This document shows, piece by piece, positions 1,335 through 29,659 of a stretch of DNA of 64,000 bases. Position numbers and translations under genes: made by a program. The stretch lies in the IMG/VR virus record IMGVR_UViG_3300038463_000730, positions 370,689-434,688 of that record. One strand, written 5' to 3'. Below the pieces are notes generated by a model that saw only the letters and a program-made list of their open reading frames with translations, was not told the origin of the DNA and did no database searches. Every line of letters starts with the position of its first letter. Position 1 is the first letter of the stretch.

Positions 1335-1524
1335 TCTCCACGCCTTCGTCTTTCGTCTGGCAATGCCCCTGCAATATATGCCCGTCTTCTCTAATCAGCA
1401 TCCAAAACCAGCTGTCTTCAAACGGATCTTTTATCACCTTGTGGATAAATCTACGATTCGTCCCAACTTCCTGACGCCAAAAGATTCTTTCGGAAAGAGT
1501 TTGCCAGGGACCGTGTATCCGCAT
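1267..1524 (-). CDS. Hypothetical protein, paralog family A
   Basis: VDRKAKELGYRLL motif. Confidence 0.6.
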   Translation of the reverse strand: MRIHGPWQTLSERIFWRQEVGTNRRFIHKVIKDPFEDSWFWMLIREDGHILQGHCQTKDEGVEIVDRKAKELGYRLLGERFSIFQ

Positions 1525-1583
1525 CTTAAGCAGATATCGAAATATCCATACAGGCTTCCACTACGACTTCGTACGGCTTAAAG

Positions 1584-1615
1584 AGGAAAGGCGACCTAGC
1601 CTGGTCGCCTCTCCC
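1584..1615 (-). terminator. Probable intrinsic terminator closing the ncRNA array
   Basis: GGGAGAGGCGACC-AGGCTA-GGTCGCCTTTCCT hairpin followed by CTTT. Confidence 0.55.
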
Positions 1616-1694
1616 GTTCGTTTTACAAAAACAAAGTTTGTAATGGCCGTTTTTACGAAGTACTCATACGTTTAAAACAAGAAGTCACATTGAA

Positions 1695-1839
1695 GGTCGC
1701 TATTATCCTGCCATTAGACGACTTCCCCGCTAAAGACACAAACCACCAGTCTTTAGTGTTGCTATTTTACAAGTCGTGCCTCAACGAGCTTGTATCCTTA
1801 GCGGGGAAGGTTAGAATTGAACTAACATATAGCTGAACC
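1695..1839 (-). ncRNA. Circularly permuted tRNA-like RNA, element 2 (YrlA-like topology)
   Basis: Order on minus strand: GCTAT, T arm GTTAG-TTCAATT-CTAAC, CTTCCCC ... GGGGAAG, D arm GTC-TAATGGCAG-GAT, ATAGC; acceptor helix extends to 18 bp (1722-1739 with 1792-1809). Confidence 0.75.
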
Positions 1840-1909
1840 TAGCTTCTTATTTTTCGACTAAGCACCTCATTGGCGATTTAACTTGGAATGATAGTCTAAA
1901 GTATCATGT

Positions 1910-2035
1910 GGTCTAAGCTTTTGCCTCTGCCATTCGGCTACCTCCTCAGATGGCCGGTCTAAACCGGTCGTTTTTATGCAACCGAAGTTGCGGCGAGGAG
2001 GGCAGGACTTGAACCTGCAAATTTAAGCTGTCCGA
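1910..2035 (-). ncRNA. Circularly permuted tRNA-like RNA, element 1 (YrlA-like topology)
   Basis: AGCTT, T arm GCAGG-TTCAAGT-CCTGC, CCTCCTC (1995-2001) ... GAGGAGG (1941-1947), D arm GCC-GAATGGCAGA-GGC, AAGCT; linker holds a cUUCGg hairpin. Confidence 0.75.
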
Positions 2036-2122
2036 AGTACTGAAGATTGATTCTAAGTTTGTGTCATTCCTAACATCCGATTCGGCCGAAGCCGTTCCGG
2101 AATCCTTTGGTTCCCGCGAACG

Positions 2123-2869
2123 TTACTTCGCGAACAAGAAACCGAAAACCTTATTACCGACGTGCTGCTGGCTCACATCTGTGTTGTTGGCAGCCTCGCG
2201 AGCAAACTTCACCGCGTTCTGCAACTTCTCGACCCGACGAAGCAACTCGGTTGCTCTGGCCTGCGGCAACGCGCCAGACGCCTTCACCGTGCTCCACGTT
2301 CCGACCAGGACGTCCTCGGAGAAGACATCAACTTGTGCCGGGTGTTTGTCCGTTGCGGGAGCCTTGACGTGGTTCCGCATGACCTTCTTTGTCTTCACCG
2401 TCTCGCTGGCCGGTGTGACGAAGTTATTCGTCGCGTTGCTAAACTCCCAATGCTCAGACGGATCCAGAACGGGAAGCTTCTTCACGAAGGTGTGAATATC
2501 AACCAGTTCCTTCTCCAAGAAGAGAAGATACGTGACCGGAACCTGGGCGAGCAATGTCACCCCATCCACCACGACATCTCCAACAGCCTTCGTGTTACCC
2601 CAGTCCTTTGTCGCCGTGACATCGAATTTCTTCGAAAGAATCTCGGTCGTCTTGTCGAGCATTTCCTCGACCGTCACCTGAACGCGAGTCTCCTCTGAGG
2701 GAAGCTTGTCGCCTTCCTCATCCTTCGGAGAGTACTTCCGCGCAATGCCCTGGAGCAGTGCGGGCTTCTGCAAAGCGTGATGCGCCTCGGTCAACTCAGA
2801 GTGTGACCGTGACTTCGTGCCCTTCTCGATTGCGATGATCTGATTTAGTTTAACTGTGCTCATGTTCAT
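2123..2869 (-). CDS. Conserved uncharacterised protein (KLNQIIAIEKG family; recalled as DUF7873, unverified)
   Basis: 248 aa, GC-biased codons; motifs KLNQIIAIEKG, YLLFLEKEL, HPAQV, RVEKLQNAVKFAREAAN resemble a family I recall from Actinobacteria/Myxococcota. Confidence 0.7.
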   Translation of the reverse strand: MNMSTVKLNQIIAIEKGTKSRSHSELTEAHHALQKPALLQGIARKYSPKDEEGDKLPSEETRVQVTVEEMLDKTTEILSKKFDVTATKDWGNTKAVGDVVVDGVTLLAQVPVTYLLFLEKELVDIHTFVKKLPVLDPSEHWEFSNATNNFVTPASETVKTKKVMRNHVKAPATDKHPAQVDVFSEDVLVGTWSTVKASGALPQARATELLRRVEKLQNAVKFAREAANNTDVSQQHVGNKVFGFLFAK

Positions 2870-2911
2870 TTCTCCGTATCTTAATTTCTCGTAAACGTCT
2901 TTCCCATTTAG

Positions 2912-2986
2912 AGCCCACAGCTGGATTCAAACCAACGACTCCGCAGCACGAAGGCCGCGTACTCTGATCAACTGAGTTATGTGGGC
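2912..2986 (-). tRNA. tRNA-like, Arg(UCG)-like with 8-nt anticodon loop
   Basis: Full cloverleaf; stem CGCGG/CTGCG encloses CCTTCGTG; T loop TTTGAAT; no CCA. Confidence 0.65.
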
Positions 2987-3004
2987 AAAACTGTTACCGT
3001 AACT

Positions 3005-3080
3005 TGGAGCCCAGGGTTGGATTTGAACCAACGACCTTCCGATTAAAACCGGCTGCTCTAACAGACTGAGCTACCCGGGC
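3005..3080 (-). tRNA. tRNA-like, Lys(UUU)-like with 6/8-nt anticodon loop
   Basis: Cloverleaf with encoded CCA; CCGG-TTTTAA-TCGG. Confidence 0.65.
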
Positions 3081-3108
3081 CAATAATGAAACTATGAATT
3101 GAAGGTCA

Positions 3109-3158
3109 ACGATCGACCTCCGCGTGAAGTCTGCACCTGGGTGCATCGTACCGATCGT
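3109..3158 (-). ncRNA. Small structured spacer RNA
   Basis: 8-bp stem 3109-3116/3151-3158 enclosing hairpin TGCAC-CCAG-GTGCA. Confidence 0.3.
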
Positions 3159-3179
3159 AAGTAGGAAACCGTTAACCAG

Positions 3180-3257
3180 TGGGGAGTGCTGCTTTCGAGA
3201 CAGCGACCACTCCGGGTCGAAACCTTTCGTTGCTCTACCATTCTGAGCTAACTCCCC
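3180..3257 (-). ncRNA. tRNA-like RNA without a recognisable anticodon arm
   Basis: GGGGAGT/ACTCCCC acceptor, perfect D arm, T arm GCTGT-CTCGAAA-GCAGC; anticodon region contains GGT-TTCG-ACC. Confidence 0.65.
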
Positions 3258-3287
3258 GTAAACTACAACTCGACAAACGTAACTTGT

Positions 3288-3719
3288 TCATATCTGAACA
3301 ATGAATCGACCGGCCTCCTCAATTCCTTCGATCACCGATCGAGCCGTTGCTCGGTCTAGATCTTTTTGCTCTTCAGAAAGTTCCGTATACGGAACAAACA
3401 AATCCTCACCCTTCGAACTATAATACTCTTTGAACCCTTGCGATTTCTTCTTTGTCATCCAGCCTTCGTGGACTTTATCCGCAATCACTTCCAATACCGT
3501 TACATCTTCGAACTTCGAAAAATACACATCCATTCGGTACATCAACTCTTCGCCAATATCACCGTCTCCACCAGCCTGGAGATCCAGCTGTCCGTCACAT
3601 TGATCTTCATCAATCTTTCGAATTGCATTGAAAAGAGTAACAGACTGTTTGTTATGCGGAATTCCTTGCTCCCAACGTTCTTCAACGGTTAGTTTGGACG
3701 TGTCTTTTTTCTTCTTCAT
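3288..3719 (-). CDS. RyR-domain protein
   Basis: IADKVHEGW...FVPYTELSEEQKDLDR matches the RyR repeat; start moved to the ATG just after the tRNA-like element. Confidence 0.7.
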   Translation of the reverse strand: MKKKKDTSKLTVEERWEQGIPHNKQSVTLFNAIRKIDEDQCDGQLDLQAGGDGDIGEELMYRMDVYFSKFEDVTVLEVIADKVHEGWMTKKKSQGFKEYYSSKGEDLFVPYTELSEEQKDLDRATARSVIEGIEEAGRFIVQI

Positions 3720-3722
3720 GAG

Positions 3723-3797
3723 CGGGACGAGCCGGATTTGAACCAACGTTCGGGCAGATTTCGCCACCCGTATCCTAAGCCACTAGATGATCGTCCC
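3723..3797 (-). tRNA. tRNA-like RNA with extended anticodon arm (no clear anticodon)
   Basis: GGGACGA/TCGTCCC acceptor, Glu/Asp-type D arm, CGGGT-GGCGAAATCT-GCCCG (10-nt loop), 3-nt variable loop. Confidence 0.6.
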
Positions 3798-3807
3798 AAA
3801 GAAAAAC

Positions 3808-3905
3808 GATTCAGAAACCTCACTAACATTTCGAACTATTAGTGCTGCACGTAAGCTTTCAATAATATAAATCAGAAATCTGTTTTATGCTTACTTTCGT
3901 GAATC
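3808..3905 (-). ncRNA. Structured RNA with T-loop-like hairpin
   Basis: Outer stem GATTCA/TGAATC, stem GTAAGC/GCTTAC, hairpin CACTAATA-GTTCGAAA-TGTTAGTG. Confidence 0.4.
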
Positions 3906-3912
3906 ATCTTCT

Positions 3913-3990
3913 TGGCTCGCGCTGATGGATTTGAACCACCGACCTTCCACCCGCTAAGGTGAACGCTCTAACAGACTGAGCTAAGCGCGA
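3913..3990 (-). tRNA. tRNA-like, Val-type body with 8-nt anticodon loop CUUAGCGG
   Basis: Cloverleaf with CCA; TTCAC/GTGGA stem; short variable loop. Confidence 0.65.
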
Positions 3991-3997
3991 ATGATAA

Positions 3998-4477
3998 TTA
4001 CTCGAACAATACTTTGTACACCTCCCGTAGTTTACCTAGCCAGGAGCGCCGAACGGGGCTCGAACCCGTGACCAAGGCATTTAGAGGGCCCTGCTCTGCC
4101 GCTGAGCTATCGACGCGCTTTAGGTCTACGTAGTTACGTAGAGCCAAAGGAAAGCTACTAGTAAGAGAGATCGACGACGCTGACCCAGGCTCAAATGCAA
4201 TCGCTGTTAGGCTATGATTAAGATCTTCTTCGGTAAAAGCTAAGTACCGAGCGCCTATTTCGTCTGCCTTCGCCTTGAGGCTAAGAAGGGCTGCTTCATT
4301 CTCAACACTTAATAGAACTACTGTGTTCGAGTTGACATGCCACTCTTTCGTAAGTTCGGGCCATGCCTGGCTAAAATCAATTGCTGCGTGCAACATCTGA
4401 GATGCCTGTTGGCCAGCACGCAAATCGTTTCGTGTAACGACATAGAATTTAGCAGGTGCGTTCGTCATCTACGACAT
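3998..4477 (-). CDS. Pth2-family peptidyl-tRNA hydrolase-like protein with in-frame TAG at codon 3 (alternative start at 4468)
   Basis: YVVTRNDL..GQQASQ..HAA, NTVVLLSV, E.DLNHSLTAIA, FPLAL motifs; SD GGAGAG 8 nt before ATG-TCG-TAG-ATG. Confidence 0.75.
4045..4116 (-). tRNA. Amber-suppressor tRNA (anticodon CUA) embedded in the pth2 ORF
   Basis: 72-nt cloverleaf; loop CT-CTA-AA (anticodon 4082-4084); one C31:U39 mismatch; no CCA. Confidence 0.8.
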
Positions 4478-4480
4478 GAT

Positions 4481-4645
4481 TTATTCTCTCCGTGTGTAAT
4501 TCTGAGTACGTGTCCCGGAACTACCGCTCGACATCTGGAATAGATTGATCGATTTTTCGAGAAGCTTAAACACAACGACCCCACGAGGAAAATCCAGGTG
4601 AGGCCACAGATGAAGCTGGTCGTTACAAATCTATCCAAACATCAT
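4481..4645 (-). other. Leader ORF(s): MMFG-amber followed in frame by an open 49-codon stretch that includes uORF MSSGSSGTRTQNYTRRE (4534..4481)
   Basis: Manual translation; the region also folds (4574-4580/4618-4624; 4541-4547/4626-4633). Confidence 0.35.
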
Positions 4646-5396: not shown

Positions 5397-6167
5397 TTAT
5401 ATCACGTATCTAGGTTGTGTAAAGACACCTTCATCACTAATTAGTGATGACTGGTGAGAGTTGAACACGGCTCTCAAATCGTACGCAACTCCATTTAGTT
5501 CACAACCAGACAACACCAATCGAATCCCGTGTGAATAGTCAGCGTACGTATTACTATGGCTGACCGGATTCAAACCCTGAATCGGATTGCCATTCGGTTT
5601 AATCCAACCAAATATAGCGACGTTCTTAGGGTACTTGAGCAATTGGGGTGTAATGACAACATCCTTCTTGATACCGCTAACCAACACGCCCAAATGATAG
5701 CCAGGTAACCCGGCAAGCTGTGCCTGCACGACATCGTTATGTTTGCTGAAGTAAGAGGTTGTTGTCATTGCTGCGGTAGGCGGTAGGTTGGTTGGTGTCA
5801 TCTCACATGGCGCAGCCTTCCACGTATCAATGACCATTTTCCTCGTCGGTAACATACACTCGTACTGGTCCGCTATCTTCTGCGCCGTGAGAGGATTCAT
5901 CGGAACCCGAACGAAATCGTCGTCACTCCCGATGCAAAGGTAATCCGGAGCCACGTAATAAACGATCGTGTCACCAACTTCACCGGAGTCTGTTACCGTG
6001 ATCGGAACGAAATTCCGCATGAAGTTCGGCATATTCCCCTGAACGAACTGCTGAAGAATCGCGTCCTCTCGGACAGGCCCGAGATCCATATTGATCACTG
6101 ACTGAACAAACTGTTTCCCTGTCAATGCACTGCTTTGTCTATCCGGAATCATTTGTGCCTCCCACAA
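5397..6167 (-). CDS. Conserved hypothetical protein, possibly a cell-wall-acting enzyme
   Basis: LPTRKMV, KKDVV, AIFGW, HSNTYADYSHGIRLV motifs; function not established. Confidence 0.55.
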   Translation of the reverse strand: MWEAQMIPDRQSSALTGKQFVQSVINMDLGPVREDAILQQFVQGNMPNFMRNFVPITVTDSGEVGDTIVYYVAPDYLCIGSDDDFVRVPMNPLTAQKIADQYECMLPTRKMVIDTWKAAPCEMTPTNLPPTAAMTTTSYFSKHNDVVQAQLAGLPGYHLGVLVSGIKKDVVITPQLLKYPKNVAIFGWIKPNGNPIQGLNPVSHSNTYADYSHGIRLVLSGCELNGVAYDLRAVFNSHQSSLISDEGVFTQPRYVI

Positions 6168-6255
6168 GTAAAATATAACGTCTCAATAATAATCCACACA
6201 AATTCGTTGATTGTATACCGGACACCTTGAAAACTAAGACGAAACAATTTTCGGT

Positions 6256-7119
6256 TCATTTCAAATTCAGAAGCTTCTGGAACTCCGGAACCATCTTAAG
6301 AAGTCTCTTCTTCAGAACGTCATCTGTCTTGAGCAAGAAGTTCCGAGCAATTTTGTAACGAAGGTCTACATCAGTACAAGTGAAGATCGACTTCATGATT
6401 GCTGCGCGCTCACTGACTTTCGAGGAGTACCGACTGTTGTTATAGTTGCCGTAGCCAATCGGGTTGCCCCATATATCAAGCTTCGGCTTACTCCGATGCG
6501 CCCAGAACTCGTTGAACTTTCTCTCATAAATCTCCCCGGCTTTCGGAGTGAACTTATTCAGATAGTCAAGCATTCTGAATGTCACATTGTAATTGGAGTC
6601 ATCCTTGATATCAAGCTCCTTAATATCCAGCAAAAACAACTCGGCTACTTCTTTACTAATCGGAACTTCTCTTGGTATCAGTTTCTTAACGAGGTACCTC
6701 GTGTGTGACTTGTCAGGCTGTATCGAGCTGTTCGGCGCAAACGCGACAACCATATAGTTCTTGAAGTCCGGGCCGTTACCACCGGCAAAGAACTTCATCA
6801 TGTCTTCGACGTAGCCAGTACTGTGCGTGTTGGGTAATTGATTCGTGTTATTCAACGCTAAGTTGTAGAACTCCAACAGAGCATCGTACTGCACGCTCTT
6901 TACGTAAGCGGTCTGCACGATACATTTAGCTAGATCCAGCTCTGATAGATCGGCACGGTGAGTGCGCAATCGATCACGCAACTTATCCGTGACTTCTTCC
7001 AGATTTGACAGAATATAATTCTTCGCTGCGGTTTGCAGGATATGATTCGCGATGCCGGTGCTGTTCGGCACGGCCGAGGTATATCCCGTTGCTGCGAATA
7101 GTTCGTCAATGAACTTCAT
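6256..7119 (-). CDS. Hypothetical protein
   Basis: 287-aa ORF. Confidence 0.7.
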
Positions 7120-21721: not shown

Positions 21722-21806
21722 TCACGCGGACAGGACTCGAACCTGCGATCCAGGACCCTGGAGGCGTAGTTTCATACGCTGTGTATAGCCACTCCACCAA
21801 CACGCT
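21722..21806 (-). tRNA. Type II (Ser-like) tRNA-like RNA, 6-nt loop UGAAAC, weak acceptor stem
   Basis: Good D and T arms, GCGTA/TACGC stem, variable arm TCCAG-GGTC-CTGGA; acceptor 5/7 paired. Confidence 0.55.
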
Positions 21807-28487: not shown

Positions 28488-29659
28488 GGTTTAGCGAGAT
28501 TGTATCCTTCACCAACTAGCTTGACTTGCATCCGGCTATCCAAGCGAGGTTCATAACGTTCTTTGACCGTGTTGAGAACCCAGCCTTCGCGAAGGTGCTT
28601 ACCGCCAATCGTGGTCATACCTTCTGCCAACGGATACATCTCCTCCTTACCGAGCCACGGTCCCCGATAAAGCTCGGGCACCGGATCCAACCCGGCAGCC
28701 CGTATCATAGCGACCTTGTCGTCGTAATCCAAGTAACGTTTCGTGGATTCGTTGAAGACGTCAAAGACGAACAACTTCGTTTGCAAAGCTCCGTTCAAGA
28801 CAGTTGCTTCGTAACGAAATCCTTTGACTTGTCCTACAACTTCTCCGAAGAAGACCATCATCGGAAATTGCTGGAGTTTGTTTTCCAGATCGTAACGAAT
28901 CGCTATGTCCCACCACATATCGTCTTCGTCACGCTTCTTGTAGTAATTCCTGCTCTTAACCCAGAGCTGGGTACCGTCATGGCAAAAAGCTGCGTTCGAA
29001 CCATGAAGCTTTTCCGTGAGGACAACCTCTTCTTTCTCCTGAAGACAGAGAAGGTATTTCCTCACGCCATCGATGTCGTAGTGCGGGATAGTCCAGCCTT
29101 TTGGCGGCGAAGCTTGATTCGCACCTTTGGTCTTCTTCGCACCAGGAAGATTATCCTCTTCCTCTTCTTCGTGTTTCTTTAGCCAGAGCGCGTCAACGAT
29201 CTGATCACCAACGCTCCATGGAACATTAATGGTCTCGGCAGAGAGGCTTGCCAATCCTTCTGGCGGCAAGACACTTTGTTTCAGAATTGACTTCGCCGGA
29301 AGCAAAGTCAGCGGCATCAACATTCCTTGGGAATAAGTCCCACGAATGCGCTTCGCCTTGATGACCCGGTATTTTTCCGGGACCGATCCAACGGTATACT
29401 TAGGACCCAAACGGCGAGTCTTTAGCTCACCATTCTCCTCGTATTTCTCGTGGATGGCGGGACAAAGAAAGTAGAACGGATCCGTATCCGGAACGATCGA
29501 ATCGATCGGAATATAGCAAACCAGATCCCCAACTCGGTACTCGTCCCGCTTAACGATGACGGGGTAGTCCGTGAGAACGGTAGCAATATCCAGAACATCC
29601 GCATCAGGATGCTTACGGATCGACTCGATCACAACGACCTGAGGTTGCCAGTCAGACAT
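28484..29659 (-). CDS. RNA ligase, Rnl2/DRB0094 family
   Basis: N-terminal HPDAD..GDLVCYIPIDS module; motif I EKLHG; FGE, FVFD, REGWV, K motifs. Confidence 0.9.
   Translation of the reverse strand: MSDWQPQVVVIESIRKHPDADVLDIATVLTDYPVIVKRDEYRVGDLVCYIPIDSIVPDTDPFYFLCPAIHEKYEENGELKTRRLGPKYTVGSVPEKYRVIKAKRIRGTYSQGMLMPLTLLPAKSILKQSVLPPEGLASLSAETINVPWSVGDQIVDALWLKKHEEEEEDNLPGAKKTKGANQASPPKGWTIPHYDIDGVRKYLLCLQEKEEVVLTEKLHGSNAAFCHDGTQLWVKSRNYYKKRDEDDMWWDIAIRYDLENKLQQFPMMVFFGEVVGQVKGFRYEATVLNGALQTKLFVFDVFNESTKRYLDYDDKVAMIRAAGLDPVPELYRGPWLGKEEMYPLAEGMTTIGGKHLREGWVLNTVKERYEPRLDSRMQVKLVGEGYNLAKP

Follow-up and report, generated by a model that had tools for sequence, protein, structure and literature searches.

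The frameshift-suppressor transfer RNAs (tRNAs) sufD, sufA6, sufB2 and sufJ carry anticodon loops of 8 nucleotides (nt), each being a single mutation of an identifiable isoacceptor that retains a defined anticodon, and tRNA punctuation or tRNA-like processing signals are found in mitochondrial transcripts and in the MALAT1 mascRNA. The phage tRNAs described as escaping nucleases reportedly keep a 7-nt loop. In general, phage tRNA arrays are read as codon-supply or nuclease-escape devices, and 'undetermined' tRNA calls are dismissed as pseudogenes. Among bacterial RNAs, the YrlA-type Y RNAs have tRNA-mimicking modules to which Ro60/Rsr binds (Chen et al. 2014, PMC4201824), and the YrlA of M. 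smegmatis is cut by RNase P and has CCA added to it (PMC4201824). As regards phages, the respective abstracts report that the tRNA nucleases of the host are evaded by tRNAs with substitutions in the anticodon loop (van den Berg et al. 2023, PMC10264068) and that the tRNA-Lys of T5 counters PARIS (PMC11464382). Here, a stretch of 64,000 nt (the window) was analysed, which comprises the terminal 64 kb (370689-434688) of the 434,688-bp IMG/VR record IMGVR_UViG_3300038463_000730, from a peat phage of ~435 kb. A cluster of tRNA-shaped elements with unusual anticodon arms was found on its minus strand, named t1 (2911-2986), t2 (3005-3080), t3 (3913-3990), tl4 (3723-3797), tl5 (3180-3257) and tl6 (3104-3177). 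The reading that best fits the data, already listed among several in a first-pass annotation of this DNA, and the one favoured here on balance, is that t1, t2, t3, tl4 and two further elements are selected, functional, non-decoding mimics of the tRNA L-shape.

To begin with, the four neighbouring cloverleaves with anticodon loops of other than 7 nt that had been reported in the first-pass annotation, two of them with CCA, were recovered by ARAGORN and the Rfam tRNA model (RF00005), with 43.7, 54.8, 52.9 and 34.3 bits for t1, t2, t3 and tl4, respectively, all of them above the gathering score of 29 bits. Their loops were 8, 6, 8 and 10 nt long, and none of them showed the canonical 7-nt loop on a stem of 5 base pairs (bp) with U33 and a purine at position 37. 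In particular, t1, with its 21 stem pairs all standard, presented the 8-nt loop CCUUCGUG on the 5-bp stem CGCGG/CUGCG, was called 'tRNA-?(Glu|Arg)' by ARAGORN, had C33 and U37, thus having neither U33 nor a purine at 37, and encoded no CCA. The body of t2 ('tRNA-?(Lys|Stop)') was Lys-like, with U73, an encoded CCA and the 6-nt loop UUUUAA, on an anticodon stem whose uppermost position is a G.A mismatch and whose closing pair is G.U; the nearest canonical tRNA of the genome was Lys(UUU), with 75% identity. The body of t3 ('tRNA-?(Leu|Ala)') had U1-A72, G73, an encoded CCA and the 8-nt loop CUUAGCGG. Such an encoded CCA, present in t2 and t3, was found in only 3 of the 20 canonical tRNAs. Furthermore, tl4, whose score came from a whole-genome search, had a canonical D-loop and T-loop, acceptor, D and T pairs that were all standard, a variable loop of 3 nt, and an anticodon arm consisting of either a 5-bp stem with the 10-nt loop GGCGAAAUCU or a 7-bp stem with the 6-nt loop CGAAAU.

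The deviation had been described as concentrated in the anticodon arm, which was only partly right, since the elbow was also affected. The D-loop of t2 and t3, AGUCUGUUA, contained a single G and therefore no G18G19 pair, and t1 combined the D-loop AGUUGAUCA (G18, A19) with the T-loop UUUGAAU (U56). The canonical elbow (G18G19 with psi55 and C56) was thus absent from t1, t2 and t3 and present in tl4, with the T-loop CUCGAAA of tl5 (see below) as a further deviation. Moreover, tl5, tl6 and a tRNA with the anticodon CUA (4043-4116) had been overlooked. Of these, tl5 was added by our own body scanner (7-bp acceptor, 5-bp T stem, T-loop consensus and D-arm), which recovered most canonical tRNAs and gave one match in shuffled comparison loci; tl5 was undetected by the Rfam tRNA model. 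It had the acceptor GGGGAGU/ACUCCCC, a normal D-arm and the T-loop CUCGAAA, with 7 of 7 acceptor, 5 of 5 T-stem and 4 of 4 D-stem pairs, and its minimum free energy (MFE) fold was a cloverleaf in which the central region (anticodon and variable) formed a short hairpin with no anticodon-like loop. A fifth element with an odd loop, proposed at 21722 (21722-21806, minus strand), did have a 6-nt loop, but its class II-shaped, tRNA-like body was weak, with a sub-threshold Rfam tRNA score of 18 bits and 5 of 7 acceptor pairs.

A total of 24 tRNAs were called by ARAGORN in the whole genome, 20 of which were canonical, one was the CUA tRNA and three were 'tRNA-???', the latter all within the 2911-3990 region; all tRNA genes were on the minus strand. 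Sixteen of the 20 canonical tRNAs formed a single, wholly canonical array at 339-360 kb of the genome. As had been stated, canonical Lys and Leu tRNAs appeared elsewhere in the window, namely Lys(UUU), Leu(UAG) and Leu(CAA), together with Thr(UGU). The share of '???' calls was 3/24 here, compared to 2/135 in 37 related loci and 1/13 in the phage Tunturi_5, an excess with a binomial P of ~0.01 by our own arithmetic. The three '???' tRNAs and tl4 lay within 1.1 kb, and all the aberrant bodies fell within 2911-4116, adjoining the CUA tRNA. On the other hand, the genome search gave a 90-nt Rfam tRNA match of 32.8 bits outside the window (genome 351508-351597, minus strand), not called by ARAGORN, which, lying at the border of the main array, may represent one more tRNA-like gene of non-canonical type. 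Tunturi_5 (PP885688.1; L049 4575-4651), a cultured jumbo phage of Acidobacteria of the genus Tunturiibacter, was found to hold within its tRNA array an Asn-like body with the 8-nt loop GCUGUUAA and an encoded CCA, and this phage could serve as an experimental model. BLAST relatives among GenBank phages were discarded, as they showed generic tRNA similarity only, the match in Tunturi_5 being a canonical tRNA-Thr.

Odd loop lengths could be sequencing or assembly indels in normal tRNA genes, and the U run in the t2 loop does lack one base compared with related phages (UUUUAA vs. UUUUUAA). However, Logan contigs from three samples of three studies (runs X1, X2 and X4) showed 0 substitutions and 0 gaps where they covered positions 1400-4500 of the window, those of X1 and X2 spanning all four elements and the pieces of X4 spanning t3 and part of t2; being contigs and not raw reads, they would be compatible with rare variants within the population. 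Near-identical sequence was present in several peat metagenomes. Furthermore, a relative (L043, see below) keeps the 18-nt arm of t3 and an identical 10-nt loop in tl4, and four independent errors within 1.1 kb beside ~20 clean tRNAs are implausible. Because the independent assemblies from other peat samples are identical, the loop lengths are not assembly errors. The indel error that had been named as a possible refutation was thus looked for in contigs from three samples and not found, and an artefact is considered extremely improbable.

The elements were then compared with L043, a 7.2-kb Logan contig found by a protein search with DUF7873 (84% amino acid identity in this protein), which is syntenic with the window for an exonuclease, PTH2, an open reading frame (ORF) with a RyR domain, and DUF7873. 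Orthologs of the CUA tRNA, t3, tl4, tl5 and t2 were identified in L043. The element t1 was the only tRNA-like element of the locus with no counterpart there; no homolog of it was found, and its D-arm pattern gave only chance matches to coding sequences in viral contigs. The four-fold degenerate sites of three flanking genes were 50-61% identical (~57%) between the window and L043, so that roughly 4 in every 10 neutral positions are expected to differ. Given this divergence, tl4 differed at only four bases, accounted for by one double compensatory pair in the acceptor (A-U to G-C) and one in the anticodon stem (G-C to A-U), and its 10-nt loop was identical, the neutral chance of which is 0.57^10, or ~0.004 (our own arithmetic). 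For t3, compensatory pairs were found in the acceptor, T and anticodon stems, with one U.U mismatch in the anticodon stem of L043; its arm was 18 nt long in both genomes, with the loops CUUAGCGG in the window and CCUAACGG in L043. For t2, two compensatory pairs were found in the acceptor and one in the anticodon stem, and the arm was 16 nt long in the window vs. 17 nt in L043 (7-nt loop CACUUAG, with A33). Finally, tl5 had an identical acceptor, D stem and T arm in both genomes, while its central region was unrelated (26 nt vs. 29 nt).

When t2, t3 and tl4 were summed, 8 double compensatory changes, 4 one-sided pair-keeping changes and 2 disruptions were counted, both disruptions being in anticodon stems. 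Considering the 48 pairs of their acceptor, D and T stems, none was disrupted, 6 showed double compensatory changes and one a one-sided pair-keeping change. A young pseudogene would be in line with the 1-nt length change of t2 relative to its ortholog and with its G.A mismatch. However, compensatory changes of this kind against a neutral divergence of 43% exclude pure decay for t2, t3, tl4 and tl5, and these bodies are under structure-preserving purifying selection. The assertion that they are not random pseudogenes is thereby upheld, with 0 of 48 body pairs disrupted in t2, t3 and tl4 at ~57% four-fold identity. Selection appears to retain the acceptor stem, the D-arm and the T-arm, together with the encoded CCA in two elements. 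In addition, t2 and t3 were observed to share a D-/T-loop variant within each genome (AGUCUGUUA and UUCAAAU in the window, AGUGUUA and UUCAAUU in L043); these paralogs being alike within and unlike between genomes, either gene conversion or a shared partner that reads the elbow is indicated.

In contrast to the bodies, the sequences of the anticodon arms are not conserved as anticodons, although the loop of tl4 is conserved as a sequence. The putative anticodons in the window and L043 were UAGC vs. UAAC for t3 and UUU/UUA vs. CUU for t2, and position 33 in L043 was C in t3 and A in t2. The MFE folds closed the loops in all four elements, predicting a 6-bp stem with a 6-nt loop for t1, a 5-bp stem with a 4-nt loop for t2, a 7-bp stem with the tetraloop UAGC for t3 and a 7-bp stem with a 6-nt loop for tl4. 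Moreover, positions 33-37 of t3 changed from U.G in the window to C-G in L043, as expected if these two positions pair. A 7-nt register for t3, drawn by ARAGORN in L043 with a mismatch, was also considered and rejected; applied to the window, this register yields a loop of 6 nt, and for this reason there is no common 7-nt reading of t3. Judging from these predicted folds, the anticodon arm probably presents no anticodon, being instead a stem of 5-7 bp with a loop of 4-6 nt (t1, t2, t3 and tl4) or a short, fast-changing hairpin (tl5), and the RNAs with odd loops probably do not decode. Furthermore, identity between the odd tRNAs and the canonical ones encoded by this genome did not exceed 75%, and hence the former are not recent copies.

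The opposite possibility is that these are unusual but working decoders, either with 8-nt loops that act as +1 frameshift or quadruplet suppressors, or with loops, above all that of t2, reshaped against host anticodon nucleases and still translating. The window copy of t3, readable as C32-U33-[UAGC]-G37-G38, does fit the known layout of 8-nt-loop suppressors, in which four bases lie between U33 and a purine at 37, but neither t1, lacking both flanking bases, nor the L043 copy of t3, where U33 is replaced by C, does so. Positions U35-U36-A37 of t2 were kept in both genomes, and related phage copies had UUUUUAA or UGUUUAA loops with U73-CCA; however, we know of no 6-nt anticodon loop that decodes, and a discriminator U73 does not fit Lys identity. 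The encoded CCA of t2 and t3 and the adjoining conserved CUA suppressor and PTH2 gene would also suit decoders, as would the phage tRNAs with changed anticodon loops that, according to the abstracts cited above, escape tRNA-targeting defences (PMC10264068, PMC11464382). Against decoding stand the anticodons that differ between orthologs, the lack of any anticodon-like loop in tl4 and tl5, the predicted closing of the loops into stems, and the absence of an excess of in-frame stops or interrupted long ORFs in the genome. Stop-codon recoding was likewise rejected: coding density and in-frame single-stop junctions revealed no TAG, TGA or TAA excess beyond their use as stops, among the 221 open frames on the minus strand with 200 or more amino acids, 27 ended in TAG, and an alternative code therefore does not account for the CUA tRNA. 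Overall, decoding by these elements is considered quite unlikely, and the frameshift or quadruplet suppression that had been proposed for them is not supported, given the differing ortholog anticodons, the lost U33, the loops that can close and the 7-nt loop of t2 in L043.

The single-G D-arm was also followed beyond the locus. The D-arm 17-mer of the window was found in 4 viral contigs, two of which had full cloverleaves (the arm being 24 nt long with a GAAA cap, or the loop 9-11 nt long), and the D-arm 17-mer of L043 was found in 54 viral contigs with 51 distinct sequences. Of these 51, ARAGORN called 21 canonical (several with the odd anticodons AAA, AUA, AAU and UUA) and 5 '???', leaving 25 uncalled. 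Our own parse, in which a few cases were mis-registered (one CUA suppressor being read as a 9-nt loop), gave 32 complete viral bodies, 12 with a 7-nt loop and 20 with loops of 3-21 nt. The 20 deviant bodies averaged 6.75 of 7 acceptor, 4.9 of 5 T-stem and 4.9 of 5 anticodon-stem pairs, being as good as the members with 7-nt loops; they had 17 different acceptor sequences and 14 of them encoded CCA. In a recurrent viral form, an extra hairpin with a GNRA cap replaced the anticodon loop and ACCA was encoded (L057 5529-5631, L058, L066, L074, L075, L096, L103 and L040 1379-1468), and in several contigs this form lay 76 nt from a Lys-like member with the loop UUUUUAA and U73-CCA. When the same 17-mer was searched in 185,579 cellular genomes, mostly ordinary Met, Thr, Lys, Gly and Ile tRNAs were obtained. 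Among 48 complete cellular bodies, 29 had a 7-nt loop, 16 had loops of at least 12 nt and three were short deviants, most of the 16 long loops starting normally and then running into an archaeal-type intron, in DPANN archaea. The cellular control being mostly canonical, the aberrant anticodon arm is a feature of the viral copies and not a property of the D-arm. An exact-pattern scan of viral contigs with the D-arm of tl4 gave 0 matches.

The cluster forms part of an RNA-dense island extending from 4468 to ~1565 and conserved in L043, with PTH2, the CUA tRNA, t3, a spacer RNA, tl4, the RyR ORF, tl5, tl6, t2, t1, DUF7873 and a large structured RNA in order of transcription. The first of these is an ORF for a PTH2-type peptidyl-tRNA hydrolase (3998-4468, minus strand; Pfam PTH2, E = 4.9e-9, residues 7-101), followed by the CUA tRNA (4043-4116, minus strand; ARAGORN, and Rfam with 57.3 bits), a canonical tRNA of the amber suppressor type with U73 and a Gly-like acceptor (G1-C72, C2-G71, G3-C70), whose anticodon was kept in L043 (3752-3824). 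The spacer RNA (3799-3912, minus strand), lying between t3 and tl4, was conserved and structured according to the alignment and RNAalifold, with 28 pairs, 3 of them compensatory and none broken between the window and L043. The RyR-domain ORF (3288-3719, minus strand; Pfam RyR, E = 2.6e-7) encodes 143 amino acids. The element tl6 (3104-3177, minus strand), also conserved in L043, is a 74-nt four-way junction of cloverleaf shape that lacks the tRNA loop signatures, in which RNAalifold found 24 pairs, 2 compensatory, 6 with one-sided pair-keeping changes and none broken. The DUF7873 gene (2123-2869, minus strand; Pfam PF25283, 354 bits) lies directly downstream of t1.

This arrangement raises the possibility that the elements are former tRNA genes surviving as cis-acting RNase P and RNase Z signals that cut the RyR, DUF7873 and PTH2 messages, as in tRNA punctuation. 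The RyR ORF is bracketed in both genomes, as tl4 ends 3 nt (CUC, counted from its discriminator base) before the ATG and tl5 begins ~30 nt past the stop. Likewise, the PTH2 frame meets no stop ahead of the CUA tRNA gene and continues across it, also in L043 (3373-3870), so that RNase P cleavage there would leave a message with no stop. No terminator-like sites were found on the coding strand from ~4470 to 1310, and the strongest conservation was seen in the acceptor, T-arm and elbow, which are the parts read by RNase P and RNase Z. However, a cleavage signal has no need of a 10-nt loop and a stem conserved with a compensatory pair, as in tl4, and seven tRNA-shaped units for three ORFs, some of them directly adjacent (t2/t1 and CUA/t3), exceed what would be required. 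Moreover, in many unrelated phages, the bodies that share the single-G D-arm have retained perfect anticodon stems as well as an encoded CCA. Because tl4 retains its loop and a compensated stem, redundant copies lie side by side and stems and CCA are retained more widely among viruses, processing signals alone are insufficient, and punctuation, taken together with the young pseudogenes mentioned above, is considered unlikely.

Under the favoured interpretation as non-decoding mimics, the elements would be co-transcribed with the neighbouring ORFs and excised by RNase P and RNase Z, a cleavage that would at the same time release the messages of RyR and DUF7873, and the CCA-adding-type enzyme of the phage would mature their 3' ends. 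Once mature, the mimics would work in trans on putative proteins that dock on the tRNA body, serving these as ligands, decoys or adaptors; lacking a usable anticodon loop, they would take no part in decoding and would escape cleavage at that site. Genes for a CCA-adding-type nucleotidyltransferase (genome 208063-208461) and for 2-3 RNA-ligase-family proteins (window 28544-29032, minus strand; genome 286856-287338) are present in the phage, and this gene content suggests that it can repair and mature tRNAs; RtcB was not found in the phage genome. A decoy role against tRNA-targeting defences would be attractive given these repair-type enzymes and the Lys-like t2. Several points weigh against the mimic interpretation. 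The partner acting in trans is putative, and the island was not listed for any RNA run. What anticodon nucleases mostly recognise is the anticodon stem-loop, precisely the part that is altered here, which weakens the decoy version. Only one relative, L043, was informative, each ortholog comparison being one of two sequences, and t1 has no ortholog, so that the inference of selection covers t2, t3, tl4 and tl5. Closer relatives were sought through the RyR protein: a metagenome scan gave one distant locus with no tRNAs, and a protein search yielded, apart from L043, just one fragment of 1 kb with no tRNA-like elements. Furthermore, t2 of L043 has a 7-nt loop with the Lys-type UU-A positions, and t2 could thus be a decoder in L043 and a 1-nt deletion variant in the window. 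Finally, processing signals alone could explain the conservation of the acceptor, T and D parts.

Downstream of the DUF7873 gene, an RNA with two circularly permuted tRNA-like domains was identified (1565-2093, minus strand; module A at 1923-2018 and module B at 1705-1826). In each module, the order is T-arm, 3' strand of the acceptor, cap hairpin, 5' strand of the acceptor and D-arm, and a helix resembling an anticodon stem closes it. Between the window and L043, both acceptor helices covary, and 24 of the 133 pairs found by RNAalifold were compensatory. A standard-order reading of the Rfam tRNA match at 1802-1947 (27 bits) was rejected, since L043 no longer has the acceptor pairing that this reading requires, in contrast to the permuted pairings, which covary. 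A scanner for the permuted layout, applied to loci fetched through the DUF7873 gene, gave 71 matches vs. one in shuffled sequence, with two modules downstream of DUF7873 in most loci and one in others. An alignment of 23 loci contained 46 consensus pairs, 42 of which showed compensatory changes, with none broken in acceptor A, and N-CCA followed the 3' acceptor strand of each module in many loci. A profile made from the alignment matched directly downstream of DUF7873 at every locus that carries the gene end and downstream DNA, including held-out viral and bacterial ones (L044-L047, one of which is a Ktedonobacter chromosome), except for L027, where the RNA was upstream. These matches were mostly near full length, with 60-199 bits, the weakest being a partial one of 40 bits (L036), and this phage had one copy. 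The RNA is ~300-530 nt long, on the same strand as DUF7873 and mostly 50-450 nt past its stop codon (L001-L036 and L043-L047). No family of Rfam 15 corresponded to it, no mention of it or of DUF7873 was found in the literature searched, and an exact-pattern scan of viral contigs gave 0 matches. The AlphaFold model of DUF7873 (predicted local distance difference test, pLDDT, of 81) had no Foldseek match in the PDB at E <= 0.001, and its bacterial gene contexts were uninformative as to function. In L043, a LAGLIDADG-type ORF (6162-6860, minus strand; faint Pfam match) was noted on the opposite strand directly after this RNA; the window contains no such ORF.

A broader interpretation, which is offered here tentatively and as less probable than not, would place the cluster as a satellite of an as yet undescribed tRNA-mimicry system. 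In it, DUF7873 and the RNA that follows would form a ribonucleoprotein in bacteria and phages, and in megaphages this unit would sit in tRNA arrays with mimics of closed anticodon arm, a suppressor tRNA and PTH2. During infection, they might jointly monitor the tRNA pool, titrate it or protect it, in a manner analogous to Ro60 and its Y RNAs but built from unrelated parts. As regards the source, the record is a provirus by its IMG/VR class, with a completeness of 100% (CheckV estimate). The RyR protein of the window was also present on a 502,994-bp contig, and the 434,688-bp 'provirus' record may thus have been trimmed from a longer assembly.

Both tRNA mimics (YrlA, transfer-messenger RNA (tmRNA) and viral 3' tRNA-like structures) and phage tRNAs with altered anticodon loops are already known. 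No description was found of the combination seen here, that is, a conserved cluster of standard-order bodies with closed or resized anticodon arms, a broader tendency of viral bodies with the single-G D-arm to have aberrant anticodon arms, and an adjoining DUF7873 gene with its twin permuted RNA. If the pattern holds widely, large phages would possess a class of RNAs that have the shape of a tRNA but a role outside translation; tRNA annotation would change accordingly, and candidate decoys or adaptors for tRNA-binding proteins of host or phage would become available. Moreover, DUF7873 and the twin permuted tRNA-like RNA would constitute a new protein-RNA pairing, which is testable.

Comparing the cluster with the described systems one by one, the 8-nt-loop suppressors resemble t3 of the window in the intact body, the single extra nucleotide in the loop and the U33 and purine 37 around four bases; unlike them, the cluster has loop sequences that are not conserved, 6- and 10-nt loops alongside, and loops that can pair shut. 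The phage tRNAs that escape nucleases, as presented in their abstracts, are similarly phage-encoded and clustered and deviate in the anticodon arm, and t2 is Lys-like, tRNA-Lys being a common nuclease target. However, those tRNAs are described as working decoders, while here the loops are mostly of 6, 8 or 10 nt or the arms are closed, and no 7-nt loop was found in t1, t2, t3 or tl4 of the window. With tRNA punctuation, the cluster shares tRNA shapes that flank ORFs (tl4 at the start of RyR and tl5 after its stop), but the conserved loop and stem of tl4, the multiple adjacent copies and the encoded CCA suggest more than a cleavage signal. The tmRNA is alike in devoting a tRNA-like domain to a non-decoding use and in the permuted gene order of some lineages, and unlike in that no G3.U70 (the acceptors having G3-C70) and no tag reading frame were present here; the tmRNA option of ARAGORN detected none, and there was no Rfam tmRNA match.

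As for the YrlA-type RNAs, the Rfam model (RF02553) gave best scores of 18.6 and 16.8 bits, compared to a gathering score of 69, and no match in 1450-2200. No TROVE match, as expected of a Ro60/Rsr partner, was found in the 434,688-bp record, while the control genomes expected to match did so. The phage thus differs from the YrlA systems in having no TROVE/Rsr gene, and its DUF7873-associated RNA in having two modules and adjoining a protein unrelated to Ro60. Moreover, t1-t3, tl4 and tl5 have the standard strand order of a tRNA and are not permuted as YrlA is. On the other hand, YrlA resembles the cluster in being non-decoding and in keeping the D-arm, the T-arm and an acceptor-like stem, and it shares with the DUF7873-associated RNA an identical domain order of T-arm, acceptor hairpin and D-arm.

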